Positions 1,460 to 48,477 of a stretch of 64,000 nucleotides of DNA are shown piece after piece. Where the stretch lies: contig JBLDXI010000031.1 in assembly GCA_047495785.1 (NCBI GenBank), positions 682,001 to 746,000 of the forward strand, given 5' to 3'. Position 1 is the first letter of the stretch. Each line of letters starts with the position of its first letter. Both the position numbers and the translations under genes were made by a program. The notes beneath the pieces were generated by a model. That model had not been told where the DNA came from, made no database searches, and saw only the letters and a list, made by a program, of their open reading frames with translations. This stretch comes from Lepidodermella squamata. Its lineage: Eukaryota > Animalia > Gastrotricha.

Positions 1460-2281
1460 ATGTATACTGTGTTAGTTCTAGCGATTCTACCCTTAGCTTT
1501 AGCTCAGGTATGATCGATCAATTTTCCCTGAATTTTAATGATTTTCTGGGATTAACAGGAAGTCCCTGGCGTCGCAGATTTCGACGTCTCGCAATATGTC
1601 GGCTTATGGTACGAAGTCTACAAAACAAGGGGCATGCCATTTCAATCTGATGCGGCAACCGACGTGACAGCTCAATACACGAAGAACGAAAACGGAACTG
1701 TAACAGTCCTCAACAAGGAATGGCGGCCCTGGGAAAGCCGTTGGAGCTCAATGACCGGCCTCGCTACGCCTAACGCAACCGAATCTGGCGTATTCTCAGT
1801 CCAATTCCCTGGCAATCCAGTACCAGGAGATTACCGAGTCATTTCCACTGATTATTCAACGTATTCGATTGTATACAGCGTTAAGCGATACTGCTGGATC
1901 TTGTCACGTTTCACTAATATGACTGACGCTTTCGCTGCGACGTTGTTCGCGTTCATTCGAGAGAAGACCGATTTGAGGCCGTATCAATTCTTGAAGACGG
2001 CGCACGGTGTTTGGAACGTGAATACGCCTGAGAAACCGGTGACTGTTCCGGTGTTTCAGCCAGTGCTGCAGCCTCAGCCAACTCCGCCTCAGCCCATCTG
2101 GAACCCGCAGCCGCCGACGCAGGCGCAACCGCAGACGTTCCCGTTTTTCTGGCCGTTTAACAACAACAATAATCAGAATAGCAATAGCAATACTAACAAT
2201 AACAACAACTTCTTCAATCAAATGCCACCGCTGGCTTTGCCGAGCTTTGGCAACTTCCAGAATTTGCCATTGTTTGGCTGA
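1460..2281 (+). CDS. Secreted lipocalin with P/Q/N-rich aromatic tail; exons 1460..1507, 1559..2281
   Basis: Signal peptide MYTVLVLAILPLALAQ, phase-0 intron, DFDVSQYVGLWYEV (SCR1 GxW), DYRVISTDY, CWILSR; tail with FFWPF, poly-Asn, ending LPSFGNFQNLPLFG. Confidence 0.9.
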
Positions 2282-3290
2282 TAGCTGATAGCTGAATGCT
2301 GTTTTCTCCCTTGCACTGCCTAAAGTCTAGTAAATATCATTGAACACAGTTATTTTGAATTGAACTAAGCAGAGCTTATTCGCAGATATATTTCGAAGTA
2401 AAACTTGGTCTGAAAAGTGATGGATTGTCTCTTATGAATGGGTCATTGAAGAATACTGAAGTAGGAAAGGCTTCAAGAAACGAAATCGATAAGGAAACGA
2501 AGTCTTCGATCGTTGTTTGCCGCTTCAAATTTCTCTCTGGATGAAAGAAATTCGTCTTGAAGAAATTGGGACCACGGCTTGTTGATATAAATCGCAAAGG
2601 TTATTCTTGATCACCGGAACTAAGCAATCAAGTCAACGTCTAAAATTGATACCAGAATCCGAAACCAATTCGTCAATTTTTCACAGAGGCTCGGTTACAT
2701 ATCAATGCATTTCGAATGAAGAGCAGACGAGGCAGCAGTTATTTCTAGAGAAATCTCCGATAATCAAATAGGTCAAAGACTACCTTGAGCATATGAAAGC
2801 TGCAGGCTGCAGTAGAAAAGGAACATTTTCTAGTCAGTATGAAGCGAACAATGATCGTTCGTAAAGTTACCAGCGGCTAATTCACGAGCGTGCTCAGATC
2901 AGTAACGGCGCGCAGCATGCCTATGGACTCTTTATTTTTCTGATGTAGCCAACCCACGTGATGACCATAGCTTTGTGACTTAGCGGCCAATTATCATACC
3001 GTTTGGCCTTATGATTTAGATTTATTGAATTTCAACTCGTTTTTTCACCCCGGTAGGTCATGCAGCGACGGGCTTGCTCACCGAATGCCCGCATTGAGGC
3101 GGCCGGCGCGCGGCTTAGGCAAAGCCGTTGGGGAGCCGTGTGCTGGACGCCGGTTCAGATAATCCGCAGATTAAGCGCGGCTTTATCATCGAGCGAAAAA
3201 CACTCGCGACGCAAGCTCGAAGCACCTGCAACCTTTCTCCCTCAGCATTCGCGTTTTTTTGGATAGTTGGTAACTAGGAGGCATCGAAAC

Positions 3291-4256
3291 ATGAATTACC
3301 TGGTGATTCTCGCAATCTTACCTGCAGTCGCTCTTGCTCAGGTCTGAAGGAAACCCCCAATCGAACCTAAAAATCTATTGATTTCTCGTTTTAAATAGGA
3401 TACCCAGACGTCCGTCGATCTCTCCCAGATTATTGGCCTTTGGTATGATATCTACCATCTGAAGGACACCCCAGGCCAGGTTGACTCGTCGACTGACGCC
3501 ACGGTTGAGTACAGAGACAACGGCAACGGCACCTGGACCATCACGTCTAAGGACTGGCGCCCGTGGGAGCGTCGCTGGAACGTGATTTCAGGCCAGGGCC
3601 TGCCCAACCCGAGCGAGGGAGGTGTCTACTACGTCAACTATGCCGGCAACGCGAAGCCTATTGAAATGCGAATTCTCCGCACTGACTACACCAGCTACTT
3701 GATCGTCTACAGCCCGGTGGGCCCGTACTGCTGGATCTACGCCCGCCAGGCTTCAATGACCGATGCCGACGCAGCCTCTTTCCTCGCTTTCATCCGCGAG
3801 AAGACCGACCTGCGCCCGTACCAGTTCGTCAAGACTGCCCATGGCGTTTGGAATGTCAACATCCCCAATGCTGACGATCAAAAACCTGCTCCCCAGAATG
3901 TCAACCCGATCCAGTGGGTTAATGTTCAAGTCCCGCAGCCCCAAGCCCCAGCGCCGTCCCCGCCACCAGTTGTCGCCCCGCCTCAGGTCGCGCCACAGCC
4001 TGCGCCTGCCCCTCAGCCCCAGGCCCTCCAGCCTCAGATGCCGGCCATCCCAGGTCTTCAATCCCTGTGGAACCCAACCAACCTCCGCCTGTGGCCTTTT
4101 GGTGATAACAACGCTGCCCTCCCCGGCTCTGTCCCTGCAACCAACCAGAATGCCAACCAGAATAACAACAACCAGAACAACAACGTTGCAAGGATCAACC
4201 CGATCCCATCTCTCCCGACCATTGGCAACTTTGGCGGCTGGCCTCTTAACGGCTAA
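3291..4256 (+). CDS. Secreted lipocalin with P/Q/N-rich tail; exons 3291..3341, 3399..4256
   Basis: Signal MNYLVILAILPAVALAQ, phase-0 intron, GLWYDIY, RTDY, CWIYAR; close paralog of the 1460 gene (FIREKTDLRPYQFxKTAHGVWNVN). Confidence 0.9.
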
Positions 4257-5246
4257 ATCATGGTTTTGGAGATGTAGAAAGAACATTAGTGTGCATTTTA
4301 GTTAGGGCCCGTCCTGTATGCTGTGCAGCTGATAACTGTCTATGTTCTTCTGAGGAGTTAGGTTCGAGAGACAAGAATAAAAATGATAAGTGTCATGTCG
4401 CTGAACTGAAAACGCTAATCAGGAAATGTTGCTTGATGTTCGCGGTTATCGGATAAAAGCTGAGAGTATTTTAGCTTCAAGCCACATAACATCGCATCAG
4501 GATGTGAGAAACAGTGAGCGAATTTTCATGGTTCAGTAATGATTTTCATCGGCATTCGCATGGAAATCTTTCGAAAAGAGACAAGATCAGGACATAATTT
4601 TTGGGCTTCGCTGAAAAAAGGAAGCGGTAAAGGGATTCCGCTATGCTGTTTCATGGGAATTTCAACGCTGCGAATTCACTATTACAACGGTGGCCAAAAA
4701 GGAATAAAGGAGGGATACTATTCTGCTACAAATCACACTTATCCTTTTTATTTATCACTCAGGCTTCTGATAGATCTGTATTTCTGCAATATTTAGAATA
4801 TTTTTGACATCCGAAATGAGCATTTATTCTCATACCGCCATAATGCTCACAAGCTATTTTGTCAGTCTAATGTTAATGCCAGTTCTCAGTGCTATACTAT
4901 TTAAACCAACGTAAAATATAATGCATTAGTCTGAGCTGTGGCAAAAGCTTGTTGACTCACTGCCGCGCATAAGTGTAAGGAAAAAACTCGCGGGTAAGTG
5001 CGTCACTAAACGTAGTTTTTTCCTGTTTATCGCCGAGTTTTCAGAAACGCGTCAAACGGCGCTTACATTGTTCAAACGATATGAACACTATTTTTTGCTA
5101 ATCAACAGCCTAAATTATGACGCTGACTGCCTAGGTCATCGGGCGGACACGTGGAAAAACATAAAAAAAATGGTTGAAAGTAGGTAAACAGACTGAAAAA
5201 AGCGAAACTGTGGTGATGAAACAGAAGGGCTGGCCAAGAATTTGTC

Positions 5247-5338: not shown

Positions 5339-6465
5339 ATGTTTGCTATCTCATTCACTCTTGGCTTTGTCGCCATCTGTATTCATTCCTGCAGTAAGTT
5401 CAGAAGAATATTGAAAATTCAGTTTTCTTAATCGATCTTTCTTCATTAGTTTCTGCTCCGGCTGATGGCGACTGGAATAACTGGAAGGCGGGGAACTTGG
5501 TCTCCTACCCTAACCCGAATGAAGACCGCCTACGTGCCGATATCTTCAGCCAACGCAAGGCAAAGATCGAAAATCACAATTTAAAAGGCTCAGCGTCGTA
5601 CAAACTCGCTCTGAATCGTTTGGCTGATCAAACTGAGCAGGAACTGAAAATGCGACTCGGCGCTGTTGCTCCGACCGGACCGCTTGTTGGCGCCGTTACC
5701 ACGACCACAAAAAAAGCGACTACCATAACAGCGAAAGCGACCACTACAACGAAAGCCACTACTACGACAACGAAAGCTCCCACCACAACTACAACAACTG
5801 CTGCTCCTCTTGCTAGTCTAGACTGGAGAACAAGTGGCGTTGTAACTCCGGTTAAAGATCAAGGATCCTGTGGTTCTTGCTGGTCCTTCTCGTCAACCGG
5901 AGCTCTCGAGGGCCGTTACAAGCTGAAGTACGGCAACTTGGTCTCTCTTTCAGAGCAAAATCTCATGGATTGCTCGTACTCCTACGGTAATCAAGCTTGC
6001 AACGGCGGTTGGATGAATTCAGCATTCAGCTATGTTCAATCGGTCGGCGGCATCAATACAGAAACTGCCTATCCCTATAAAGCAGCTAGCAGCACAACTT
6101 GTTTATTCAACAACACTGCTTCGGCTAAATTCGCTTCAGTTTCATCGATTGTCAGCGTTGCAGCGACTGAGGCTGCTCTAATGCAGGCCCTTCAAACCGG
6201 CCCGGTCTCTGTCGCGATCTACGCTGGTCACGATTCATTTTGGTACTACTCAAGTGGCATCTATAATGATTTGAATTGCACGGCTAGCATCGACCATGCA
6301 GTTTTGGTTGTAGGCTATGGAACTGATGCTGCTACAAACACGAACTATTGGCTGGTCAAAAACAGCTGGGGCGCTTGGTGGGGCGAGCAGGGTTACATTC
6401 GCATGGCTCGCGGCTGGAATAACTGCGGAATTCTGAGCTACGCTAGCTATCCTGTGATTGCCTAA
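5339..6465 (+). CDS. Cathepsin L-like papain-family (C1A) cysteine protease with Thr/Lys-rich insert; exons 5339..5393, 5450..6465
   Basis: Signal peptide; I29 propeptide with ERFNIN-like and LNRLAD motifs; LDWR; catalytic QGSCGSCWSFS, DHAVLVVGYG, KNSWG. Confidence 0.93.
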
Positions 6466-6795: not shown

Positions 6796-7895
6796 ATGCG
6801 CCGAACTGCACTGCTGCTAATAGCGATAATTTGCCACAGCGTTGCGCCGCAATCGACCTACAACCAATTACCACTGCACACCGATTTTGATGCTTCTCGA
6901 TTTGTTGGCAAATGGTTTGAAATCTACAGGTCCATCACATCGCCCATTGAAATGGGGACTGATGTTTCGATAAACGTAATTCTGAATGGGGACGATAGCC
7001 TCGGCTTTTACAAGCAGGAATGGCTACCGCAGGAGAGGAAATGGCGGTTAGCTGTCGGTCAGGCCATGGTTCCTGAGCCGAGGGAGCCTGCGCAATGGTC
7101 GATCCGCTTTGTCAATTTCGGCCCATCTGCTGCAGTTGACCATCGAGTGCTTTTCACCGATTACCGGCAAATCGCAATTGTCTACGGCGAGGTAACAACT
7201 TCACGAGGATTGACGAAGTACGGTTGGATTTACAGCCGGTTGAAGACGCTGCCGAAGGATTTTATCGATTATGCGATTCAGTTGTTGGAGATTCGCGGGT
7301 TGGGTAAGGAACTAATGACTGCGGTTCCGCATGGCGTGGCGATGTTCTACGGAGGACCGATGGAGATTGCTCGACCGATTAGAAGAGCTAGTTGGCAGTG
7401 GACACCTACAACTTCTACTACTACAACTACTACCACGACTATGACTCCATATCTACCTGTACCAGTCTGGATACTACCTCGTAATAGCAACAAAAATGTT
7501 CATGCAAAAAGAAAAATATTAATTTTCTTAGCAAAATTGAATTCAGTATTACTAGGGTCGATTCATCCTTCCAATTTTTATCCAATTTACATTATCAATA
7601 ATAAATTTAATAAAAGTTTCCGGTTCCTCTCATTAAAAATTAAATTAACAAATCATCAAATTTAAAATTAAATTTAAGTAAAGATTTTGAAAAATCGCAA
7701 AAAATAAAAAAAGTTGAAATAACATTTTTTTGAAAATAATTAATCATTGGTTCATGCTTAAAATGCTATGATTATTATCAAACATAAGTTTAATTTCATA
7801 ATCAAATTACTTGAAATTTTCTACCGTGTCCTAGTTTATGTATTCTGAAAGCTTTTCTCTCTCTTTTGTTTAGGGCAGCAGCAACAAAGACCACT

Positions 7896-7928
<33 letters not shown>

Positions 7929-8064
7929 ACAGCAGAGACAGCAACTACAACAAAGACCACAGCCGCTAGGACAGTCGCCATTGTCTCCGATAAGCAGATC
8001 TGGCGTAGCCTGGTTTCCAAGCCTACTCGGCTCAAATTGGCCATTTACCAACATCATAGGCTAA
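6796..8064 (+). CDS. Secreted lipocalin with Thr-rich and polyQ tail; exons 6796..7480, 7874..8064
   Basis: Signal peptide, DFDASRFVGKWFEI, FTDY, GWIYSR; AT-rich phase-1 intron 7481..7873; last exon QQQQRPLQ(n)...AWFPSLLGSNWPFTNIIG*. Confidence 0.85.
7876..7953 (+). repeat. CAG/CAA polyglutamine coding repeat
   Basis: Interrupted (CAR)n tract in the last exon of the 6796 gene. Confidence 0.85.
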
Positions 8065-8355: not shown

Positions 8356-9219
8356 ATGTTGCCGGTGACCATTATTTGCGTAGCTATTTTAGCACCAGTT
8401 GCAGTCAACGCCCAGTCGACGTCGGGCGAAGCGCCGCTGCAGCCAGATTTCGACGCGCAACGGTTCGCCGGCACGTGGTATGGCATTTTCCGCAGTAAGG
8501 ACAACAAGATGTACGCTGGGACGGACCACTCGTCGACGTTTTCTGTCGTCATGGACGGGACAGTTCGCATTTTCAACTTCATGTGGCGGCCTGATTTGGC
8601 CAAATGGATCTACGTCTCCCAGGTAGGGACCGTTCCTAACCCAAGAGAACCGGCGCAATGGGAAATGCGATTCACGAACAACCCTAGGCTTGCGCCTCTT
8701 GATTTCCGAGTTTTAGCGACTGACTACACGGATTACGCGGTCATTTTCTCGGAAACAGTCCAGCCAACAGGGCTATCGAGAGATGGTTGGATCCTTAGTA
8801 GGACTAAGACCTTGCCCCAGGCAATTCTAGACTACGCTTTCGACCTACTGGAGCTTCGAGGCTTGAGTAAGGACTTTTTCGAAGCTGTAAGACATGGAGT
8901 TGCCCCGAATAATGGATTTGTGGTCGAGAGACCTCAATCTATAACCGTCCAAGTCCCGGTTCAGGTGGTCACGCGGCCAATCGTAATGCAGACACCACGG
9001 CCACTCCTTAGAGCCACGACTACAACAAGGCGGCCGAATCCTTTGATGATGTTCCCTTCCTTGGGCTTCTCAGACCCTTGGCCAGCGGTTCCTCAGTTGA
9101 ATTTCCAACTGCCCGGCCTGCAGAGTGGTCTTTTGTGGGGGGATTTGTTTAACAACAACAATCAACAACAAAGGTATGGCCAGCAGCGACAGCAGCCGCA
9201 ACAGGGCTGGGGCTTTTAA
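8356..9219 (+). CDS. Secreted lipocalin with T/P/Q-rich tail (single exon)
   Basis: Signal peptide, DFDAQRFAGTWY, LATDY, GWILSR; tail ends QQPQQGWGF. Confidence 0.92.
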   Translation: MLPVTIICVAILAPVAVNAQSTSGEAPLQPDFDAQRFAGTWYGIFRSKDNKMYAGTDHSSTFSVVMDGTVRIFNFMWRPDLAKWIYVSQVGTVPNPREPAQWEMRFTNNPRLAPLDFRVLATDYTDYAVIFSETVQPTGLSRDGWILSRTKTLPQAILDYAFDLLELRGLSKDFFEAVRHGVAPNNGFVVERPQSITVQVPVQVVTRPIVMQTPRPLLRATTTTRRPNPLMMFPSLGFSDPWPAVPQLNFQLPGLQSGLLWGDLFNNNNQQQRYGQQRQQPQQGWGF

Positions 9220-9478: not shown

Positions 9479-10228
9479 ATGCCGCTATTTAGCCTGATAA
9501 CCTTGTTCAGCTTGCTTTACCTGCAAGCGAATGGCCAATCTTCGCAAGGCCAGTTACCGTTACAGCCTGATTTCAATCTCAATCGATTCGTTGGAACTTG
9601 GTACGCCCTGTTCCGCCTTCGGGACAATCAAATAGTGCTTGGGACCGATGTGATTTCGCAATTCACCGGGCTTAATGACGGATCGTTAGCTGTTTATCAA
9701 ATCGAATGGAGACGGCTGGAGAACAAATGGCGCTACACAGCGCAGAGGGCTACGGTCGACAATCCCCGGGAGCCAGCTTTATGGATGCTGACCATGCCAG
9801 AATCTACTTCATCCCCTCCGAGTACCTATCGAATCTTAGCGACTGACTATATCAGTTACGCAGTGATTTATGTGGAAATGGGCCAACAAAAGGGTGGTTT
9901 CATTCTTTCGCGATCGAGGACCCTTCCCCAGCAGGTCATCGACTACGGTTTTGCTATTCTGGCTATGCGAGGTGTTACCCGAGACAGCTTCGAAACTGTG
10001 ACCCACGGCGTTGCGCCAACTGTCGGCTACATAGAGCCAGTCGATAATCCAGTGCCAACTACGACAACTACCACGACTAGAGCGCCGTTCATCGCGTATC
10101 GGCCAATGAATAGGAGATTGCCTGTTCCGGTGCGACGGGAACCTGAGTCGAATGCCATTGACGCTGGTATGCTGTGGGGAGTGCCTATGACCAACGCGCA
10201 AGCGGCTAAGCTTGCGTTGGCTCAATAA
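9479..10228 (+). CDS. Secreted lipocalin with Thr-rich tail (single exon)
   Basis: Signal peptide, DFNLNRFVGTWY, LATDY, GFILSR. Confidence 0.92.
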   Translation: MPLFSLITLFSLLYLQANGQSSQGQLPLQPDFNLNRFVGTWYALFRLRDNQIVLGTDVISQFTGLNDGSLAVYQIEWRRLENKWRYTAQRATVDNPREPALWMLTMPESTSSPPSTYRILATDYISYAVIYVEMGQQKGGFILSRSRTLPQQVIDYGFAILAMRGVTRDSFETVTHGVAPTVGYIEPVDNPVPTTTTTTTRAPFIAYRPMNRRLPVPVRREPESNAIDAGMLWGVPMTNAQAAKLALAQ

Positions 10229-12581: not shown

Positions 12582-13424
12582 ATGTTATTGGCTGCGACTA
12601 TAGCCGCAGCTGTTTTCGCTCTCGCATCAGTCGATGGCCAAACTTCAGTCGGCCGTCCTGCCCTACAGGCGGATTTCGACACTTCCCGCTATGTCGGCAA
12701 CTGGTATGAAATCTACCGAACGAAAGGCTCGCCCATGGAGTCTGGCACCGATGTTACATCGACCTATGTCGAAAACGGTGATGGAACAATGACCGTCTAC
12801 AACCGAGAGTGGCTCGTGTCGAAAAATACCTGGAGCATCGCTGTAGGCCAGGCGAGGCAGAAGGGTAATAACGAGCCAGCTTGGTTCAGCATCCGCTATC
12901 TGAACTTCGGCGATAAAGAAAACGACTACCGTGTTCTTTACACCGACTACGACAATCTCGCTGTAGTCTACAGCGAATCTGTTCAAAACGGCTTCACATG
13001 GCGCTATGGCTGGATATTCGCTCGACAGAAAGTTCCGCCGACTTATCTGGTTAACTTTGGCATTCAGTTGCTAGGGAAGTGGGGAATTCCTCAGGGAAAT
13101 CTCGAGGCGGTTCTCCACAATATTGGCCCAGCGATTGGCGGTCGAACTGAATTGGCTACCCCACCGCCGCCCCCTTCTCCGGGTTTGGTTATCATATTAC
13201 CTCCAGCGACTCAACCTCCAACATTGCCGCCGCCTATTTATCGACTCCGGCCGAATCCTCCAATTTATCGATGGGAAGCTCCGACTACCACAACTACTAC
13301 AACAACTACAACTCAGGCCCCTATTCAATTCAACATTCCTTGGGTTCCGCCACCTGTTTGGAACTGGAACGCTTTGCCAGCTCTTAATTGGAATTGGAAC
13401 AATTGGCCATTCAACAAAAAATAA
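12582..13424 (+). CDS. Secreted lipocalin with Pro/Thr and W/N-rich tail (single exon)
   Basis: Signal peptide, DFDTSRYVGNWYEI, LYTDY, GWIFAR; tail ends WNWNALPALNWNWNNWPFNKK. Confidence 0.93.
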   Translation: MLLAATIAAAVFALASVDGQTSVGRPALQADFDTSRYVGNWYEIYRTKGSPMESGTDVTSTYVENGDGTMTVYNREWLVSKNTWSIAVGQARQKGNNEPAWFSIRYLNFGDKENDYRVLYTDYDNLAVVYSESVQNGFTWRYGWIFARQKVPPTYLVNFGIQLLGKWGIPQGNLEAVLHNIGPAIGGRTELATPPPPPSPGLVIILPPATQPPTLPPPIYRLRPNPPIYRWEAPTTTTTTTTTTQAPIQFNIPWVPPPVWNWNALPALNWNWNNWPFNKK

Positions 13425-15914
13425 CTCATCACTTGTATTATCAAAAATACACTACGCTAAATATGCTGCCTTTAGCTATGACGTTAACTTTTTTTTTATA
13501 TTTACGCGGAAAGCTGGATAATAAGGCTTTGTAAAAGCCGCAAAAAACACACAGTCACTCGGTGTTGTAGATGAGAGCTTTCATTCTTCAGCTACGCTTT
13601 TTTCACGGCACTGACGAACGTGACATAATGAATAAAAAAAACTATTTTTCAACTACTTCAACACATAATCCTGTGAAACGTTAAAAGCAAAAACGAGAGA
13701 AAGCCCAGAAATACAAGGAACGACGAGAGATGAGCACCTGCGTAAGATTTGAAATCATCCCACTCAAGAAGAAAAAGGCGTGAAACTAAGGAAGTGCAAA
13801 CCGGATATGTATGAGGTAATTTGGTGTAATTTGAAATTCATTGTCAGGTCAATTCTTTCAATTCTGAAGTTATTAAGTTATAGGTGCTTCTCGGAACATT
13901 TGCCAGAGTAAAGCATTTTTTTCATTCACAACTAATGCTTCCCGTTCTGATGCCAAACCTGGTACCAAGAAAAGCCAAGAAAAGCCGCAGGAGACCGATT
14001 TCATTGATTGGAGTGAGCATCTAATCAACTAAGAAAATTCATAGAAAACCGTTAGCCGCGCAAAATTCAAAAATTTAAACATTTCAGCAATAAAATGTCA
14101 TTTCAAAAAGCAAATATTAGATTAAACATTAATGATTAATGAATTAAATGTTAAATGTTCCCTTTCAATCAAGTGAAAGATATTCACGCGACGAACGACT
14201 AACGAACAACGAACAACCGTCGTCGTCGTTCTGGAGGTTACGCGCTGTAAAGCTCGCTGTAAACATTTTCACGCGCAATTTTGCCCCACTTAATCCTCTC
14301 ATCCACTTGAAGGCGATTAATTAAAAGTTGAATGTACGCTGCACGCATCTACGTCTTTAGGGCGAGGATATTTTGATCATGTGACCTAACCAATACAGTA
14401 CAGGTAATACAAAGTTGATCGCAACGGACTAATGATAAGCGCCGGATCAAACTCTGCGTGCTCTTTACATGAAAACCTTGGTGGAATAATACCTTGGAGT
14501 GAGCACTGCAACGAGATCAAAAATCATCGTGGGCATGATGAGAGCTTTGAGAAAAGGCTGGCCCGAGCCTACCAGCTAGTAAGCTTAATGATTAGTTCTA
14601 AGAAATTGAAGAATTTCAGTCGGCAAAAGAATGGTTCAAATTTCTCAATTTCTCAAAACAGCTAATTATTTGATGAATGAGCTCCAATCAATGAACTTTG
14701 CCCCCTATGCGGCTTTTAGTGACCACCTATGTAAAAGACATAGGTCTAATTTGAAGTATGCAAATTATTTGATCACATCACTTGTCATGGACATTAGACA
14801 TAATGCATCGTCAACTATTTTTGCCGCAAAGTATGACCGAAATACTTCGGGACAGAGCGTGTATAGAATAGCTTTCATCCAAGTATCACTTTCTCGCGAC
14901 ACAACTTAGGACGTATTATGATATCACTTGCCTCTAAAATAAGATTACACTCGAGATTTTCGGTGTTTTATTTTTGTTTTTGCCTTGCGTAGTAAACATG
15001 CGTGACTAAGGCAAGTTTTTTTACTACCATGTATTTAGGTGTTGAAAAATTGCATAGTAGTGAGCGGATGAGTACTCAAAATTGCACTATTGCGTGCGTG
15101 TTAGATGTAATGCCTTAGTGTCGCCTTAATGAAATAATCTTTTAGGGTAGATGCCGTATAAAAAAACCGCGCGCGCGCTCACGGCTCGGCCAAGTTTAAT
15201 GGCCAGCAGCGAGGGGTTAACCTTATTGTATATGAGAGTATGCCAGAGCCGTTGTCAAATAGAAGTTGCGTAGCCACTGGTCAGATGTTAGATGATGAGA
15301 GACTGCCAGCGATGAGCGGCGTTAAACGCTTCGACATGGCTACTACCTAGTGGCGACGCGCTTCATTAACACGTGTAACCTATGGCTATTAGCGCTAACA
15401 AGCACGCGGGTGGCCTGTTATCACCGGCCATCCAAAATGCGTATCGGCAGATGTTGTTTTCACTATAAACAACCATGCAAAACTTGTCAAAAAATATTGT
15501 GATAAATTGACATGTACTTACTCACACACTCGAGTGTGATTTTTTTCTCACCCAACCATTTAGCCTGCTAATTGCATTAGGGCTAGGCCAGTCAAAATTA
15601 AGTCGTTTCAATGAGTATTACACTTATTATGACACCTATCATAACAATATCATAATTAATAATCTTTTCCCTACCTTTGGCCTTTAGGCAGCGATACACT
15701 AGATACTATCAAGATTGAGGTGAGAAAGCTGTTCATTGAGAAGGCCATACCTTTAGCACTATCAATTATCCTAATACTTTGAAAGCGGCAACAAAACAAA
15801 AAACTTCCTTATTCCTACTATTAATCTACTTAAAATCCTTATTTTTCAGTTCGCAGAAATCGAGGATTCTAGAACTTTAATAATTATTCCAATTTTAGGG
15901 TTACTTAAGAGGCA

Positions 15915-17351
15915 ATGATCAAGTCTGTTGTGGTGTTTAGTGTTGTGGCCGCGGCGCAGGCCCAGATGATGTTCGGACCTTCGAACTTCCCGAACGGCTT
16001 CGCGAACAGCCCATCCTGGTTCCAACCGATCGTGGGTGGGAATAACGCGTTTGGAGGTAACCAGCCGTTTCAGTATCCTCAGCAGCAACCCGTGCAGCAG
16101 CAGATGATGCAACCGCAACCTCCACAACCTCCGCAACAGCCACAGCAACCACTTCAGCAGCAACAGCAGCAGCAGATTATTTTCCCGCAAGAACGGCCTG
16201 TTGCATTCGCTCCGCCTCAGCCACAATACCAGAGCGTTACCCCACCGCCTAAGGAAGTCGCTGTTATGCCAGGTGCAGTTTCTAGTAAGTCACATTATGG
16301 AATTTAGTAATTTTCGAAGCTGTTCAGTAATTTAGTTGCTATACCTAACTTTAGAACTAGCGATTTTATTTATAAGTCTCCGATTAGTTATTTTCGATTG
16401 GACATTAACAAGTTTTTCACAAGTGTTCTTTTAAAAGATGGCCTACGCTAAGAGCTTTCAGCTTTATTTTTTTTCTATTTTCATTTTTTCTCGTAATTTA
16501 GCAATTTCACTTACCTAAACTAATGTTAATACAATTTTTCCTTAATATTATCATAATTTTCATTTGCAAAGATCCTAAATTACCAATTAATAGCATCTGA
16601 TTTTCGAATTATCATGATCTGCTCTTTAACTAAAATTCAAGAAGGATACGAGGAATCCGTGGGCTTTTTAAAAAGTGGTCATTATGAATTAAACGTAACA
16701 TGTAGCATTTAGCTAATCTCAGATGATTGTTTTTCCGACTTGCTTCTACCCTTCTGTTTGCTAATTTGTGTTCCTTTTCTGCAGCTGCTTTGCCTCAATC
16801 TCCTTCAGGTTCGCTAACTCTTTCCTCTTCTTTCTGCTACAGAATAGAGTCAAATTTATTGTTTGCATTTAGACTTAGCCGACCCTCGAACTATTGTTTT
16901 CCCGGCTCAGCAAGGACCTCTTCCTCAATCTCTTCAGGTTCCAACACAATCCGAAATTCCTCAACAAATAGAAGTCCCTCAACAGCCCCAGCAACCTGAA
17001 GAAATTTACTACCCAGGAGCAATTCCATCCCAACTACCTCCTCAATACCGAGCTCAGATGCTCCAGGCTCAAAACCAAGCCAGGCAACCGGCTCCGCTAC
17101 CAGCTCAACCTCAACCAATGCCGCAACAAAGGATAGCTCAGCCACCTCAACAAATCGCCCCTCAACAGCTACAAAACCAGCCGGCTGGACTTCCATGGAT
17201 GTTTGGCCTAGGAGGCTTCGGCGGATTCCTCGGCAACAACCAGCAATTCGGCGGTTTGAACAACTTTGGCGGAAACCGGTTACAGAACCCCCAGTCACCC
17301 CAAGCCCCCAATGGCTTATGGTCCAATTGGAGCCCGTTTAGAAGCTGGTAA
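15915..17351 (+). CDS. Secreted Q/P-rich low-complexity protein with F/G/N/W-rich ends; exons 15915..16284, 16785..16808, 16873..17351
   Basis: Signal MIKSVVVFSVVAAAQA-Q; two phase-1 introns keep the frame into ORF 16863..17351; no globular domain recognised. Confidence 0.75.
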
Positions 17352-17769
17352 CTTCCAGGAACATTTAACTAGCAATTGATATATGTGAAATCCCTCTTCT
17401 ATGCTGATCCTCTTTTGTATATATTAGTTCTTCCCTGTGGAGTAAGCCTCGTGACGTTAGACTTGAACGAGGCCCTTCCCGTGTAGATATACGTATTGTC
17501 ATCGACAGAAAGAAAAGAATAAATCTCGAGATTTTTAACCGGCTTAATTGTTTTTTCATTCTTTCTGGCGTTAAGGTGAAAGCGTGCAAATGCATTATTC
17601 GGCCTATTAGCTCGTGGCGCTAAGGCTATTAAACGCCGGCACGAGTCGACATTAATTAGGCATGATGCTATGTATAAACTGCGGCTACTATGAAGTCCAG
17701 CCATTACGCATTTTGCCGCGAGTTTTGTCGCCCATTTAATTCGTCCAAACCATCCTTCAAGCCACTGAA

Positions 17770-18427
17770 ATGAATCAAGCCGCCACTGTTTTCTGCCTTG
17801 TCATCTGCCTTGCTGGAGGCTCGCTTGGCCAAACCTGGCCTGATAACTGGTTCGATTTGTCGAACCTTCAGAAGAACATCCAACAGAACATCCCGACTAA
17901 CATTCAACCGAGCCCTGTTATCGCCTTTATCCCAAGAGTTGAACAGAACCGTCAGATTCCCATCAATTCCTACGAGCTGCCGAAAGTTTTGGTCGACCTG
18001 ACTACTACTACAACAAAGGCTACTCGTAAGTTTTTTGAGTTTTTTCAGCTGAGGAAGATTAGACCTGTTGACTTTATAGCTCAGCCCGCCGCTCCTTCTC
18101 CTGTCGCTACTGCTTCTCAGTCAGGTTTAATTTTGATCCTCTTTACGGCCTGGTTTTTCATGACTTTTTCTTTGATTAATCTCCTTAGCTGCGGCCCCTG
18201 CGACTACTACAACCACCGGTGCGCCAAGTAATGTTTTGAATTGATAATAATTTCATTGGGGTTAACTTTTTGTATTAACAGTGTTCAACTGGATGCTAAC
18301 GGTCCCTGACGTTTACAGCTGGTTCCCGGCTGCTAGCCAGAAGGCTCAGAATGACACCAGCAACAACTGGTGGCCTGTTAAAGTTCCGCAGGTTTCCATG
18401 ACCAACCGCTGGCCATTCAGCGGCTAA
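17770..18427 (+). CDS. Secreted T/P/A-rich protein with Trp-rich termini; exons 17770..18025, 18080..18124, 18189..18227, 18282..18427
   Basis: Signal peptide then QTWPDNWF; three phase-1 short introns; ends NNWWPVKVPQVSMTNRWPFSG*. Confidence 0.78.
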
Positions 18428-20285: not shown

Positions 20286-22234
20286 ATGTCAGCTCGATTT
20301 ACTTCTCTAGCCAATTTCAGTATCGTCAAACGCCTCGGTCCAGTCGGCGAATTTGGAGAAGCTTTTCACGCTCGAATTGGAGATGAGGAATTCGCGATCA
20401 AAGGTGTGAACCTAACAGCTATGCGCCAGGACAAACGGTTTGGCAATAGATACGTGACAAAAATCGTTGATACCAGTTTGCAAGAAGTGAGCTCCATCTT
20501 GTCAATCCTTTCGTTTATATTTGAAATTGGCCCCTAAACCTTCACAATAGCACGGCGAACTACAAAATATTCGTGATCCATTCATAGTCAAAGTTAAAGG
20601 AGCCTTTATAGGTAACAGAATCTGTAACACACTGTTTCCACCAGTGAATTCCTGTTTTCTTTTGGAGAGAAATCTCAAGGGGATGAACCGAAAAATGAGG
20701 GACCGGAAATGTACTATCTAGTAACCGAATATTGTCCTCGCGGCACACTGGAGGATATAACCCGGAGAAACGATGGAAATGAGCGTATACCGGAAGATCA
20801 ATTGATGGGCTGGATTTTGCAACTTCTGCTCGCGGTTGAGGTCCTCCATAACAAGGACATAATTCATCGCGACATCACGCCAGGAAACATATATTTAGCT
20901 AATAATGGGGAAACAGTGAAACTCGGCGGATTTGGACTAGCTAAGAACATAACTGAGTAAGCAATTTTCAAGTTCTCATCCAGCTTAAATAATCCAAGTA
21001 ATTTGTGTATTCGAGCATTTCCCGGAATGATGTCTTGTCCGTCTTGAAAACCTATGACTACGCATCGCCTGGTGTTTACATTCGTTCAGAATTTTCTAAA
21101 CCAAGTGACATTTGGTCGCTTGGAGTGACTCTGTATGATGCAGCTTGCGGCAGCAAACCGGCAAGTCATTAACTAAGCATTCTATTCATTTAAAATCATT
21201 ATTTATTCAGTTTTCAGTTGAATCGGCCGATAGAGATATTTTCGCTCACTTCGCTGCCTTGCGATCGCCACTGTGAGATTGTGCCTAAAACTGGCTGTTC
21301 ATAAATTGATAAAATAGCTATTTTCAGTAATGCCGATGAATTTCGTGGTTATTCTATTGATTTCGTCAACCTTGTGATGTCGATGATGAGTGACCCCAGC
21401 GATCAAGCCTGGAGGAGACCTACAGTTTACCAGCTGATAGCAGTAGCTAGCAGAATCGGCAGAATCAGCCACTTGAATTTGTCTGCTGCGAATGGCCACG
21501 CTTCAATCATCGAGTTACTAATCGAAAAATACGAAGCAGATGCAAAAGTTGAAGACAGGGACGGCCGGACACCTTTGCATTTCGTTGCTTGGAAAAGCCA
21601 CGATTCAGCCGTGCAGTTGCCTGTCGACAACGGAGCGGATGCGAACGCTTTTTATAAAATAATGCCTACGCTTTCGAATCAGCTGATCGCTAGCCAACGG
21701 TTGCTTTTGAATTCGATGTTAACTAGTTACAAAGAGCATAGGAAAGCTGTGGAAAAAAGCCTTCGGTCGCTTTTGAATAAGGCTGCTTTTGATGGCTTCG
21801 ATTTTTGCGTGCAGATACTAATCGGCGAAGGCGGAGTGGATGCGAAAGCAGTTGACTGGCCCGGCATGACGCCTTTGCATTTCGCTGCATGGAATGGCCA
21901 ATCTTCAGTTGTGAAGTTGCTGATCGACGAATTCCAAGCAGATGCAAAAGCTGTAGATAATATCGGCCGCACACCTTTGCATTGGGCAGTGACGAAAGGC
22001 CACGCTTCAGTTGTGAAGTTGCTGATCGACAAATACCAAGCGGATGCAAATAGTGCTGATAAATACGGCCAGACGCCCTTGCATTTGGCTGCAAGGAATG
22101 GCCACGCTTCAGTTGTGCAATTGCTGATCGATGTGTACGGTGCGGATGCGACAGCTGTTGATATACACGACATGACGCCTTTGAATTGGGCTGCACGACA
22201 TGACTACGATTCCGTTGTTCATTTGTTGCGATGA
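20286..22234 (+). CDS. NEK-like pseudokinase fused to C-terminal ankyrin repeats (multi-exon)
   Basis: Exons ~20286..20486, 20551..20611, 20668..20956, 21016..21160, 21211..~21271, ~21329..22234; FAIK, HRDITPGN, KLGGFG, YASPG, SDIWSLG, then ankyrin repeats. Confidence 0.75.
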
Positions 22235-24132: not shown

Positions 24133-25434
24133 ATGACTCTACGGCTAGCTCAAGCTTTAGCCGTTTTCACTATAATAATATCACAATCAAAAGCTGATAT
24201 TGATCCAGCTGGATTATCCGGTAAATGGTTCGAAATTTACAGACCTGTGAAAAGCTTACTAGGCGATAGCTTCAACGCAAGCCGGTTCCCGTTAACGAAC
24301 GGAACTGACGTATCAGTCAACATCACCTGGTTCCCTCAGAACAAAGTCTTGGTATTTGATATAAACGAATGGATAGCTGGAGCGAATCGAAACGAAGGTA
24401 GATGGGCTAGCAACGTGGTGCGATGCTACGCCGATGAAAATGACACGGAACTATTCAAAGACTGCCAGTACCGGAATCAAGGCGAAGACTCAAAATTCCT
24501 GATTACGGTCAATTACACTGATTACATCAGCGTTTTGACTATGAAAGTCAGCGCTGGAGTCGAGAGGGGTTGGTTGTTGGCTAGGAGCCTTGATTTGGCT
24601 GACGAAGTGATCGATCCGGCCTATGATGCGCTCCCAGAGCTGAATATTTTCTATTTCTACCAAAAAACCGCTCATGGCTTGGCGAACCGGTCTGCTACTT
24701 TGCCACCTCCAACGCAACGACTTGTGGCTGCGGAACAGAGCGGCGATGACGAAGTGAAGCCAAGCACCACGCGTGCAGCTAGACGTATGTTTTTTACAGT
24801 CATGAAAGGAACCTTCTCATCTCGCATAATTCAGTAAAACCTATTAAATGAGATTTCTCCTTTTCTTAAATTAGGAATATTATTTTTTCTGTATTTTTCT
24901 AAAAATTAAATTAAAAGATTAATCGGGATTTTGGATTCAAATAGGGATTACGAGTTTTGTTCCCTCTGCGATGAACCCAAATTTTTCCCACACCTTCAAC
25001 TCTTGAAGGAGACGTGTAATCATCTTTTTCCATAATTCACAGCAACTCCGATTCGAACCTCATCCACAACTTCAACCACTACATCAACCACTACCACCGC
25101 AACTGAAACATTCGTAACTACGACTGTAACTGCGGCATCAGCAAGCAATCCCTCGCCTGTTGAAGACCAATCGCAGCCGATTTTTTACTACCAAAGTGGT
25201 CCAGTCTTTGATTCATCATTCCCTGGTTGGTCGCGCCGCCAGCAATGGGGTTTCCGGTACCAGTACCAGCAACCGAGCCTATTCTCCATTCCATCTTTCA
25301 CAAACTGGCTGCCAGCAATTCAACCACCCAACCTTGGCTTTTTGCCACTTTTTAACAACAATAATTACCTCCCGAGCTTCCCGAGCAACCTATACAATAT
25401 ACTTCCTATCCAACCGCCGTTTTGGCCATTCTAA
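24133..25434 (+). CDS. Divergent secreted lipocalin with Thr-rich linker and aromatic tail; exons 24133..24784, 25043..25434
   Basis: Signal peptide, SGKWFEIYR, NYTDY, GWLLAR, KTAHG; phase-1 intron; last exon ends ILPIQPPFWPF*. Confidence 0.83.
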
Positions 25435-25804: not shown

Positions 25805-27740
25805 ATGCATCTCTACAGGGCGCTGTGTCTTCTGGCCTGCGCCGTGGCTAGCCAGAGCCAGATGACTGATTTCGACGCGAAAAAGTTCGAAGGGAAGTGG
25901 TACGACCTGTACCGATCCGAAGAATTCCCATTCGCTAACGGCGCTGATACAACAGTTACGTGCTACGCGCCAACGGCTGGCGAGGTCGAAACAGGCATTC
26001 GCATGTACATTAACGAGTACCAAGAATCTGTCAGCCGGTGGGTGAACAACGTCGGGCGTAGTACGGTCGACGAAAGTATCCCATCGAAATTCTCATTCAT
26101 GTTCCTCAACCAAATCGTTGATTTCGACGACGTTCAACTTCAAGTGTTGTTCACAGATTACAACAACATCGCTGTTGTTCATGTTGATACTGGAAAGGGC
26201 ATTTACGGCTGGATTCTAGGCCGGAGCCTCGATGTACCGGAGCAATTGATTAAAAACGCGCTTATCCTACTTGACGCGAAAAATATTGATCGGTCGTTTA
26301 TGAAAGCGACAAGACACGGGTTGGCCAAGGTGTTTGTTGATACAACTTCATTACCGGGTTCGACAACGACTGAAGGAACCCCTGAACCTGTTACTACAAC
26401 TACTACTACCACCGCTGCTACTACTACTACCTCTTCTTATACTCCTAGAAGAAGGTCGACGACAACTACTACTACAACCGCTTCAACAACGTCTGTTGCC
26501 ACGAATCCACCTACTACTTCAACCACAACTACAACTTCGACTGTTAGACCTGTTACCACAAGGTTGGCAGCGACAACTGCTAGAGCTGCCCAGTCAACAG
26601 CGAAAATCGCGGCTGAAACTACTCAAGCTCCGACTACGATTAAGCCACGTCGGTCCAGTACCGAGCAGGAAGCAGTTGTTACCGTCCAGCCAGCAGTTCA
26701 GGCGGCTGGTTTAGTCGATTTCCTACCTCCTGATGTCATTCTAGTTCGAACTGCGAAGCCTGTCCCGCAGAGGCCAGTAACTTTGGACTTGAATTGGGCG
26801 ACTCCTTTCGTTTGGAACTGGAGAACGCAGGGCAAGACTGAGAACCCAGCCACTGTGGCTCCAACAAAGCGACCGCCAGTTGTTATTATTGTCGATAAAG
26901 TTAACAACACAAGTCGAACTCTTACTCCAGGACCAGGTTAGTTAATACGGAATTTATTGGTAAAATACACATTTTTGTGTCTGATTTTAGACTATTTTGA
27001 GGCAACCGAGACGACAAAAACTACAGAGAAACCGACCACACAGGCGATGCCCTGGCCCTGGATCGCTTTTCCGATAGACACATCTAATCGTAATTTGATT
27101 TTCCGCTTATTAATTTTGATTCATTTCTGTGTTTTCAAAGCCATCGATATTTTACCGTTCCTGAGTGGATCTAGGAGTTCGCCATCTACCTCAAAAGATA
27201 AAGATACCACCGCTGAATCTGGCTCGACAACTACGAAGCCTCAACAACCCACAAACAGTGAGATTTTTCCTTCAAAATCCCATCTAATGAAATTATTTCG
27301 TTTTAGTATTGGATAGCTTAAAATTGCTGCCTTTTATTGGTAATAACAATTGGCTCAATGCCAATGATACACCAACTGCCTGGACTCCAGCCGCCAATCC
27401 ATTCCGGTTTAATTTTGGCGGTCTCGGCGGTCTTGGTGGAATTTTCGGTAATACCGAGCCAGAAAAATCAACGACACAGGTTTCGATCAGTTCAACAGCT
27501 GCTTCTCCATCAGCGGCTACGACGCGTCGCGGTGCATGGGAGATGCCTTTCATGGCAAATTTGCCAACTTTACCTACACCTCAACTTCAATTCCCGTTCG
27601 GCGGCTTTGGAATGCTCAATCGCAACAACGATAATAGTAACAATAACAATAATAACAATAATAACAATAACAATGGAAATCCGTTTAATTTCAACCAATT
27701 CCCATCGATATCCAACAGTTGGAACTTCTGGCCGTTTTAG
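25805..27740 (+). CDS. Secreted lipocalin with long mucin-like Thr tract and W/F/N-rich tail; exons 25805..26936, 26991..27089, 27141..27257, 27307..27740
   Basis: DFDAKKFEGKWYDL, FTDY, GWILGR; phase-1 introns link ORFs 25805, 26957 and 27309; ends NSWNFWPF*. Confidence 0.83.
27639..27674 (+). repeat. AAC/AAT polyasparagine coding repeat (12 codons)
   Basis: (AAY)12 in the last exon of the 25805 gene; similar tracts occur in the 1460 and 29643 genes. Confidence 0.85.
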
Positions 27741-29642: not shown

Positions 29643-30875
29643 ATGACGAATATATGGCTCAGCATTGCGATCGCTGCCAACTTTGCTCAACTTTTGTCAG
29701 CTCAGGTATTTTCATTTTGCAAAAAATTCTGCGAATATCAATCAATAATTGAAGACACCATGTTTCATGGTAGCTTCAACATAACAAAAACTGAGGATCC
29801 GAAATTTGTCTCCATTGCTCAACAATTCCCGATTCGTTACGAATGTTTGACTTTTAAGATCTCAAAGCATTCCTCTTTCATATTTTTCGTGTCGCTCATT
29901 GATTTGTTTTCGTTTGGTTTTAGCTTTTTTTGGGATTTTTCGGCCCTTGTAAATCACAAACTGTTTGAAGTGTGACTTTTGAAAATTTGAAGTCTAACGA
30001 TGATATTTTACTTTTCCACGCAGCTTGTCCAAGCCAACTTCAACAACGCATCGTTCGCCGGGCGCTGGTTTGACATTTACCATATAAAAAACACGCCATA
30101 CACATCGGACTGGTCTTCCGACATCACATTCGAAATTTTGCCGGGCCCCAATAAAACAGTAATGACTGTCACCATCAAAGAATGGATAACCAACATTAAC
30201 CAGTGGCGCGAAACGAAGGGCGATTTGAAAATGGGCGATAAACTCGATACGCCAGCTGTTTTGAGCTTGAAGCTACAAGGCTACCTCGATCCGATTGATT
30301 TTCGAGTTTTATACACTGATTATTCAAGCGTGGCTGTTGTATACAGCAAATCCAGACTAGCCTGGGTATTTTCAAGGACAAATTCTATCGACGAATCTAC
30401 GTCAGCTCAATTGTTTGCCCTTTTAAGGCAACGCGTCGATTTCCGACCGTATGAATTTGTTAAAATCGTTCATGGTACGAGTCAATCCTACCAGATTATA
30501 CCGAATAATAACAACGCAGTTACCAGCCCACCTCAAACTTCTCCCGTCAACGCCTGGAATCCATTCCCCACACCGCTTTGGATGCCTCAACCGAGTAACA
30601 ATAATTTCAATAATTTCCTGCAATTACCAACGAACTTCCTCGGTAATTCCAACGGCAACATTTTGCCTGCGAGTCCCTTTATGGGTAACAACTTGTTTGG
30701 CGGCTCGAATAACAATGATATGAGGAACAGTTTCTGGCCAACAATGCCGAGATTGCAGCCTCTTAGCATTCCAAATTTGTTTGGTGGCGGCAACAGTAAT
30801 AATAATAACAACAACAATAACAACTTAGGTTTCCCATCATTCGGCAACTGGAATCAACTGCCTTTCTTTGGATAA
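29643..30875 (+). CDS. Secreted lipocalin with N/P/F-rich tail; exons 29643..29705, 30024..30875
   Basis: Signal exon ending LSAQ with the same phase-0 intron as the 1460/3291 genes; FAGRWFDIY, LYTDY, AWVFSR; ends FPSFGNWNQLPFFG. Confidence 0.88.
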
Positions 30876-47320: not shown

Positions 47321-48477
47321 ATGAAAGAGACTGCAGATCGTGTGGTAAGTCCAGATTATCAACTCCAAAATTTAATATTATATCTTTGCATACCTTTCAG
47401 CTAGCGGAGGGGGTGAAATACCTTCATAAATGGGCGATCAAGGGTGATCTAAACGAGATCAAATCAATGTTTCGAGAAATCCAAATCACTGCACCCAAGT
47501 CAAATTCTCGTCAAATCATCACATACTTGGTAGAATTTCGCAATGCTAACAACTATAGCCGAACTGCTTTGATGGAAGCTGCGGCGAATGGCCAGACCGC
47601 TGTTGTTCAATATCTAGCCATGGAACTGGGGGCAGATGTATTTGCAAGGAGTAATGCTGATGATTTCGAGTCTATGCCCATCCACCAAGCTGCTGAGTTT
47701 GGCCATCTAACTACAGTCCGTTTTCTAGTCGATTTTCGGCATGAATTGCTCGAGGCGAAGAACAAAGATGGCGACACCCCGCTGAGCCGGGCTGCTTTGA
47801 ACGGCCACTGCCTAGTCGTTGAATTCCTTGTCAAAGAGCGGCGGGCGAAAGTTGACGTGAAAGGGCAATTGGGTCGTACCCCACTTCACCACGCAGCCGC
47901 GGCTGGAAATTTGGCAATTTGCCAATTTTTGGTTGAATACGGAAATGCTGATGTAGCAGCTCGGGACTCAGATTTCGGAAGTACCCCTCTTCATCTAGCT
48001 GCGTCCAGATCTGGAGACCTAGCCACGGTCAAGTACCTGCTAAGTATCAGGCCTGATCTACTCGAGGCTAGAAATAAGGTCGATGACACTCCGTTATGTC
48101 GCGCTGCTTACAACGGCCATTTAGCCGTTGCTAGGTACCTGATTGAAGCTAGAAATGCTAATGTCGAGGTGAGAGGTGAATATGGCCGAACTCCCTTGTT
48201 GATAGCTGCTTCAACTGGTAAGACAGAAGTGGTGAAATTCCTAATTCAAGAGGCTGGTGCCAACGTATTTGCCAGGGACGATTCTCAGGATCAAGTTACG
48301 GCTATACATCTAGCGGCTTATTTCGGGTTTGTAGAGATAGTGGAACTGCTGCTGCAGAGGAGTAACGATTTGCTGGAAATTCCGTCGAATCGCGGTAAAA
48401 CTCCGCTGGCCTATGCTAGATCTCAAGATCGGGCAGCGGTCTTCACTTTTCTGCGTCAACGTGGAGCTAAAAAGTGA
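47321..48477 (+). CDS. Ankyrin-repeat protein; exons 47321..47344, 47401..48477
   Basis: About 10 ankyrin repeats, closely paralogous to the ankyrin exon of the 31486 kinase. Confidence 0.85.

Follow-up and report, generated by a model that had tools for sequence, protein, structure and literature searches.

Genes A and B within a lipocalin array

A window of 64,000 nucleotides (the whole stretch of DNA that was analysed) from contig JBLDXI010000031.1 of the gastrotrich Lepidodermella squamata carries a tandem array of lipocalin genes, within which lie two genes of another kind, both on the + strand and named here A (15915-17351) and B (17770-18427). A first-pass annotation of the window had described their products as secreted, lipocalin-less, tail-only proteins that share a short aromatic motif, Trp-Pro-Phe (W-P-F or WPF), with the C-terminal tails of the neighbouring lipocalins. 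The present analysis concerns these two genes and this motif, which appears to be a true C-terminal element of the lipocalin tails and of B, with A carrying a degenerate copy only.

Both A and B proved to be genuine genes with spliced transcripts. The splice evidence for both comes from contigs of run X1 that resemble complementary DNA (cDNA): they have SMART-type adapter ends, cover almost none of the intergenic DNA at 13750-15750, and lack segments with GT..AG at their borders. With gene A, the contigs were joined at 16284>16785 and 16808>16873, and a further joint (16284>16873) bypassed the 24-nucleotide exon between them; this exon is alternatively spliced, the depth of the inclusion contig being 203.8 compared to 111.8 for that of the skipping form. 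The joints of gene B were found at 18025>18080, 18124>18189 and 18227>18282. Every GT..AG junction modelled in the two genes was matched by a cDNA joint, and all of the introns are of phase 1. The RNA gave no indication of differing terminal exons, those of both A and B being spanned by cDNA coverage and thereby confirmed.

The encoded proteins are small, secreted, cysteine-free and nearly uncharged, of low complexity and predicted to be disordered. A signal peptide is plausible by inspection at the N-terminus of each, and the mature forms have no cysteine and between 6 and 11% charged residues. Mature A comprises approximately 270-280 residues, of which 23% are Gln and 20% Pro, and it has a G/F/N-rich stretch near its end with six FG and three GF pairs; its C-terminus is GLWSNWSPFRSW (...LWSNWSPFRSW). 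Mature B, of approximately 140 residues, begins with an N-terminal region of 65 residues, continues through a Thr/Pro/Ala linker, part of which is supplied by two mini-exons, and terminates in a Trp-rich module of 47 residues ending ...NRWPFSG. Structure prediction by AlphaFold2 from the single sequence of B exon 1 gave no confident fold (mean predicted local distance difference test (pLDDT), 49.8), which is only weak evidence of disorder. A comparison of the assembly with read sets revealed at least eight synonymous and at least two non-synonymous differences in the mature region of gene B, a pattern that would fit a coding sequence under constraint.

Searches for relatives

A and B are single-copy genes without detectable relatives. 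Their exons were searched singly, and the statistics reported here are based on exon-wise translations with split codons omitted. No exon of either gene had a Pfam match at E <= 0.1, and no paralogue of A or B was present in the 121-Mb genome. When aligned by hhalign to a profile of 47 lipocalin sequences from the same genome, B gave a probability of 3.7% and A one of 0.3%; the match of B involved its signal peptide only, and descent of A or B from a lipocalin by decay was rejected. A word-index protein search with B exon 1 returned no homologue, and an exhaustive HMMER search with the last exon of A returned no credible one; the lone match of the latter, a bacterial repeat protein of 1328 residues aligned over a Pro-rich stretch, was judged to be spurious. 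Neither a usable look-alike nor a fold was found for A or B in a protein atlas. Given the lack of a Pfam family, a lipocalin match, a fold and a homologue, the earlier description of these proteins as lipocalin-less and tail-only was a fair one.

The W-P-F motif at the C-terminus

The motif was assessed in a set of 12 proteins consisting of ten lipocalin tails together with A and B. Lipocalin membership was judged by the barrel profile (PF00061 or PF08212), of which the G-x-W motif is a part; lipocalins 8356, 12582 and 30000 have Pfam matches, 25805 is just below the cut-off (22 vs 24 bits), and the divergent 24133 is a lipocalin by hhalign with a probability of 98.2%. None of the 12 sequences contains cysteine, and charged residues account for approximately 2-17% of each.

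WPF is present in seven of the 12 proteins (1460, 3291, 6796, 12582, 24133, 25805 and B, the 17770 product), and each of these occurrences, all listed in the first-pass annotation, was located at + strand codons (Table 1), as was the NRWPFSG ending of B. This is far above composition-matched expectation: shuffling of whole tails, within exons, or in blocks of 30 or 15 residues led to an expected 0.41-0.56 proteins with WPF (0.56 with the 15-residue blocks), and none of 3000-5000 shuffles reached seven. WPF is thus enriched approximately 15-fold, and it was the strongest outlier among all tripeptides, even with 15-residue-block shuffling; the tripeptide FGG is also enriched in the tails. The codons and flanking DNA vary from copy to copy, and hence the motif does not represent a DNA repeat. 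Raw six-frame counts could not serve as a background because minus-strand frames of ankyrin-repeat genes in the window repeatedly read ...TTEAWPF... (19512, 21498-22104 and 47594-47807), which inflates such counts.

The motif also clusters at the C-terminus. WPF lies no more than five residues from the C-terminus in five of the seven proteins that contain it, compared to 0.38 expected (0/100000 simulations), and the broader pattern [WL]P[FL] occurs within the last nine residues of 8/12 proteins vs 0.24 expected. Aromatic residues constitute 20% of the last 15 residues and 8.7% of the remaining tail. That WPF forms the last three residues of 24133 and 25805, as had been claimed, holds under phase-1 GT..AG splice models; the models of the terminal exons of these two genes and of 6796 each combine a strong donor (GT) with a polypyrimidine-AG acceptor, and their introns are of phase 1, as is every cDNA-confirmed intron at A and B.

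The two orphan proteins differ with respect to the motif. The WPF of B is found within its last eight residues, for which P = 0.0014 from whole-protein composition and 0.0047 from local composition. The ending of A, W-S-N-W-S-P-F, conforms to a relaxed pattern in the last ten residues (P = 0.003-0.01, with the pattern defined post hoc), and in this post hoc view it looks like a degenerate W-N-N-W-P-F with one Ser inserted. B carries the canonical end-motif and A, in which no WPF occurs, a degenerate copy only; the earlier notion that both share the WPF/aromatic motif was upheld in part. When the group is delimited as secreted proteins with a low-complexity tail and an exact W-P-F no more than six residues from the C-terminus, it comprises B, 6796, 12582, 24133 and 25805, together with four lipocalins from outside the window; gene A, with W-S-P-F, falls outside it.

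Conservation and genomic distribution

The genome contains 51 matches to the lipocalin profile PF08212, and most of the lipocalins outside the array terminate a few residues past the barrel and have no tail. Four tailed lipocalins outside the window (C1:2432117, C28:1521277, C33:522430 and C31:642306) end in NNWPF followed by one to four residues. Two of these, at C28:1521277 and C33:522430, end FWNNWPFF and share 98% protein identity with 10% of their 4-fold degenerate sites differing; either the gene was recently duplicated onto another contig or the haplotypes were left uncollapsed. A word-index search with the whole of lipocalin 12582 found no homologue. Between the 12582 group and the C28/C33 pair, the string WNNWPF is invariant despite a protein identity of 38% and differences at 52-73% of 4-fold sites, a value near saturation, and hence purifying selection is indicated. 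W-x-N-W-P-F followed by zero to six residues thus constitutes a short linear motif of the C-terminus, with a fixed position and maintained by purifying selection. This evidence of selection pertains to the lipocalin paralogues; A and B have neither paralogues nor orthologues for such a comparison.

Genome-wide use of the motif was examined with exact DNA patterns and not gene models. NWPF-stop was found 10 times, compared to 15 and 23 times for the reversed and scrambled controls, respectively; FWPF-stop 40 times vs 114 for its control (with a stop pattern, TRR, that also matches TGG); and WxNWPF six times vs four. Thirteen of the matches beyond those in the known WPF-tailed lipocalins were examined, and none of these was in a tail-like context. 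Occurring at chance level genome-wide, the motif is accordingly a family-restricted end-tag rather than a general signal of the secretome. The earlier proposal of a shared motif was thus borne out to the extent that WPF is a real C-terminal motif of the lipocalin tails and B, and not as regards wider use among secreted proteins. Within the limits of the pattern scans, the tag appears to be confined to the lipocalin tails and B, with A being marginal.

These counts bear on the possibility that the motif is a sorting tag, whereby the free aromatic C-terminus would be read by a receptor for C-terminal peptides (sortilin/Vps10-type) in the secretory pathway or at the cell surface. Such a receptor would route its cargo to regulated secretory granules or take the lipocalins back up. 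Known cases are the PYIL and QLL ends of neurotensin and progranulin, respectively, to which sortilin binds, and the C-terminal vacuolar signals of plants (AFVY in phaseolin, for example), for which a terminal position is required. Like these determinants, the W-P-F motif is short and hydrophobic or aromatic, its C-terminal position seems to matter (it is strongly C-terminal and forms the exact end of two proteins), and it is found on otherwise unrelated cargo, namely B and the lipocalins. It differs from them in that one to six variable residues follow WPF in most of its bearers, and in being limited to one gene family and B. Moreover, given its chance-level frequency in the genome and the location of the extra matches outside of secreted-looking contexts, the motif is not a widely used sorting signal, and its recognition by a sortilin-like receptor is considered unlikely.

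A common building plan and its possible function

On the basis of their sequences and intron phases, A, B and the low-complexity extensions of the neighbouring lipocalins follow one building plan. In common, they have P/Q/N/T-rich spacers that resemble mucin linkers, aromatic "stickers" (Trp, and FG/GF), introns that are all of phase 1, and an aromatic-Pro-aromatic motif at the C-terminus. The interpretation favoured here, which is given a little less than an even chance of being correct, is that the C-terminal tag has a docking role, through which A and B come to be deposited together with the lipocalins. An exposed tag would dock each bearer to the one shared partner or material, bringing lipocalin heads on glycosylated stalks, the presumed nature of the Thr/Pro-rich parts, and the headless A and B into the same extracellular matrix or secretory condensate, to which the aromatic and FG-rich low-complexity parts may add weak multivalent cohesion.

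Several observations weigh against this proposal. WPF is absent from A, the motif is missing altogether from three of the 12 proteins (8356, 9479 and 10652), and in 1460 and 3291 it is internal rather than terminal. As the tails are paralogous, the seven copies in the window cannot be counted as independent. AlphaFold2 predicts no order at the end of the 12582 tail, and among 12 upstream regions no promoter word was found in common that would link A and B with the lipocalins. Finally, Smith-Waterman alignment of the C-terminal 70 residues of A and B with the lipocalin tails gave z <= 2.5, indicating nothing beyond composition; neither gene has support as a recognizable copy of a lipocalin tail. 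The remainder of the tails had been described as unalignable, and this stands for A and B with respect to any tail. It does not for the lipocalins themselves: the tails of 1460, 3291, 30000 and 25805 are mutually alignable (z 3.5-8.6), and that of 12582 aligns well to two paralogues elsewhere in the genome.

The absence of WPF from A, the post hoc definition of its relaxed match and the lack of alignment to the tails also speak for a more restricted role, in which the motif is functional in the lipocalins only. Its appearance in A and B would then be a coincidence in neighbours rich in W, P, F and N, or a leftover, with B having captured tail exons of a lipocalin without the function of the tag. 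The occurrence of WPF anywhere in B has P = 0.03, and the symmetric phase-1 mini-exons would ease exon capture. However, a WPF within the last eight residues of B has P = 0.0014-0.0047, variation in gene B is mostly synonymous among the differences listed, and B repeats the full plan of a head, a Thr/Pro linker and a Trp-rich end. A function limited to the lipocalins is thus regarded as rather improbable.

The Trp-rich ends may alternatively have been kept as sites of modification, either C-mannosylation of W-x-x-W (WNNW, WSNW or WNFW) or amidation at Gly and Gly-Arg ends, which would stabilize or mature the tail. W-x-x-W lies within the motif in 12582, the C28/C33 genes, 25805 and A, the last with WSNWS, a match to W-S-x-W-S. 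These strings fit the C-mannosylation motif of cytokine receptors and thrombospondin repeats; the known motifs are located within folded domains and are without Pro-Phe. Glycine is the final residue of 5/12 proteins, B among them, and Gly-Arg ends another (P = 2.5e-4 from composition); these frequent endings could reflect C-terminal amidation. With respect to enzymes, the genome encodes two members of the DPY19 family of Trp C-mannosyltransferases (C9:5013125 and C19:958845) and has 39 matches to the copper monooxygenase domain of PHM/DBH type, yet these demonstrate capacity only. Furthermore, the motif lacks W-x-x-W in B, 6796 and 24133, and its Pro-Phe is as conserved as its Trp, whereas C-mannosylation needs no Pro-Phe. 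Modification as the reason for conservation is accordingly held to be quite improbable. As a separate observation, most of the 39 six-frame matches to the domain (PF01082; copper type II monooxygenase, PHM/DBH-like) are clustered at C13:1.99-2.36 Mb, suggestive of extensive tandem expansion in a usually small family.

A further model would have the aromatic end of one lipocalin insert into the hydrophobic calyx of another to form a polymer, with A and B capping or cross-linking the chains. Lipocalin cups bind small hydrophobic groups, which lends this some plausibility, and with 12582 the pLDDT of the last 20 residues (52-57) was slightly higher than that of the rest of the tail (39-41). The predicted monomer, in which the barrel has a pLDDT of >90, nonetheless leaves the tail unordered and not docked, and most lipocalins elsewhere in the genome have no tail to insert. 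With one end-motif each, A and B could cap but not cross-link, and the model is viewed as highly improbable. It puts in concrete form the earlier suggestion that A and B function as scaffolds or cross-linkers of the lipocalins, for which no support was obtained.

Returning to docking of the bearers to a shared partner or material, the nearest functional precedent is LPR-3, a matrix lipocalin of Caenorhabditis elegans in which a short terminal motif outside the barrel recruits WRT-10, leading to a "landing pad" model (PMC13732703). In both cases, a secreted lipocalin (of a matrix in the case of LPR-3) has a short conserved terminal segment outside its barrel that brings, or in L. squamata would bring, a second secreted protein to the same place. 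The segment of LPR-3 differs in being N-terminal and in adding a beta-strand to the folded WRT domain, whereas that of L. squamata is an aromatic C-terminal motif at the end of a long and disordered tail, and the two showed no relationship in sequence. The proteins also resemble cohesive GLFG-type FG nucleoporins and other sticker-and-spacer proteins in having uncharged N/Q/P/T-rich sequence with Phe-Gly and aromatic stickers. Unlike the nucleoporins, they possess signal peptides, few FG units and a single terminal W-P-F in place of a repeat, and in the absence of a Pfam nucleoporin or anchoring domain they were not classed as FG-nucleoporin-like. A full-text search of the literature for lipocalins with such tails, or for a WPF end-tag, found neither, its one result being a survey of salivary proteins of ticks.

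With greater reservation, the W-x-N-W-P-F end may be conjectured to represent a previously undescribed and portable address tag of the extracellular space or secretory pathway in a spiralian, spread by phase-1 exon shuffling; this is thought to be doubtful. Were it so, the tag would bring a whole subfamily of lipocalins, and with it unrelated disordered proteins (B, for example), to a single material or compartment, for which the cuticle or scales, an adhesive secretion and the egg coat are candidates. The secretions of gastrotrichs (cuticle, scales, duo-gland adhesive and egg coats) are almost undescribed at the molecular level, and at this locus a C-terminal tag that is short, conserved and readily mutated is shared between a large expansion of lipocalins and one or more disordered orphan proteins. 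Provided that it serves as a docking or address signal, a peptide of six residues would be a handle with which to find the partner as well as the material, and the tag would also exemplify the gathering of globular heads and headless low-complexity proteins into one extracellular assembly, a question also studied with the nematode pre-cuticle lipocalins. Should the tag instead be a family heirloom only, the annotation of two orphan genes and the architecture of the lipocalin tails would remain.

Other features of the locus

The coordinates of the exons and motifs are collected in Table 1.

Table 1. Positions of exons, W-P-F codons and related features of genes A and B and the tailed lipocalins in the window
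Feature	Position	Strand	Remarks
Gene A exon 1	15915..16284	+	Signal peptide, F/G/N/P-rich then Q/P-rich; GT donor 16285; phase-1 intron next
Gene A alternative mini-exon	16785..16808	+	24 nucleotides, 8 codons, phase 1-1; cDNA joints
Gene A last exon and stop	16873..17351	+	Q/P-rich spacer, G/F/N-rich FG-like stretch, aromatic end; cDNA stops near 17482
Gene A C-terminal decapeptide WSNWSPFRSW	17319..17348	+	W-S-x-W-S / W-x-x-W string present; read from sequence
Gene B exon 1	17770..18025	+	Signal peptide, 65-residue Cys-free N-terminal region, start of Thr-rich linker
Gene B exon 2 (linker mini-exon)	18080..18124	+	45 nucleotides, P/A/S/T-rich, phase 1-1; cDNA joints
Gene B exon 3 (linker mini-exon)	18189..18227	+	39 nucleotides, A/P/T-rich, phase 1-1; cDNA joints
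Gene B last exon and stop	18282..18427	+	Trp-rich 47-residue module ending NRWPFSG; joint 18227>18282, coverage to 18462
Gene B WPF codons	18410..18418	+	Two residues before C-terminus; sequence
Lipocalin 1460 internal WPF	2150..2158	+	40 residues before end; protein ends LPSFGNFQNLPLFG
Lipocalin 3291 internal WPF	4092..4100	+	51 residues before end; protein ends ...GGWPLNG
Lipocalin 6796 inferred terminal exon	7874..8064	+	Q-rich, ...SNWPFTNIIG; phase-1 donor 7481, acceptor 7873; WPF 8038-8046
Lipocalin 12582 WPF	13404..13412	+	Ends ...WNWNNWPFNKK; cDNA contigs cover transcript; reference for conserved WNNWPF
Lipocalin 24133 inferred terminal exon	25043..25434	+	...PPFWPF-stop; phase-1 GT..AG model; WPF 25423-25431
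Lipocalin 25805 inferred mini-exons upstream of terminal exon	26991-27089, 27141-27257	+	Phase 1; splice model
Lipocalin 25805 inferred terminal exon	27307..27740	+	...SWNFWPF-stop; GT..AG, phase-1 junctions; WPF 27729-27737
Arg-Arg pairs in lipocalin tails (approximate)	7440-7470, 8990-9010, 10100-10140, 25230-25240, 26400-26420, 27525-27535		Putative convertase sites

Not all of the lipocalin tails end in the same manner. A different conserved ending, [LF]P[ST][FI]GN[FW]xx[LW]P[LF][FN]G, is found in lipocalins 1460, 3291 and 30000 (2237-2278, 4212-4253 and 30831-30872, respectively), and two lipocalins upstream of the window, C31:656038 and C31:656803, have tails of IPDFVRQMLG-like repeats with no WPF. 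Pairs of Arg occur in the tails of 6796, 8356, 9479, 24133 and 25805, frequently close to where the linker meets the tail, and from their sequence they may represent cleavage sites of proprotein convertases. The array also includes a gene for a cysteine protease of the cathepsin-L type (5497-6465), in which the propeptide and catalytic domain are separated by a long, Thr-rich, mucin-like linker of the same kind as those of the lipocalin tails and gene B.

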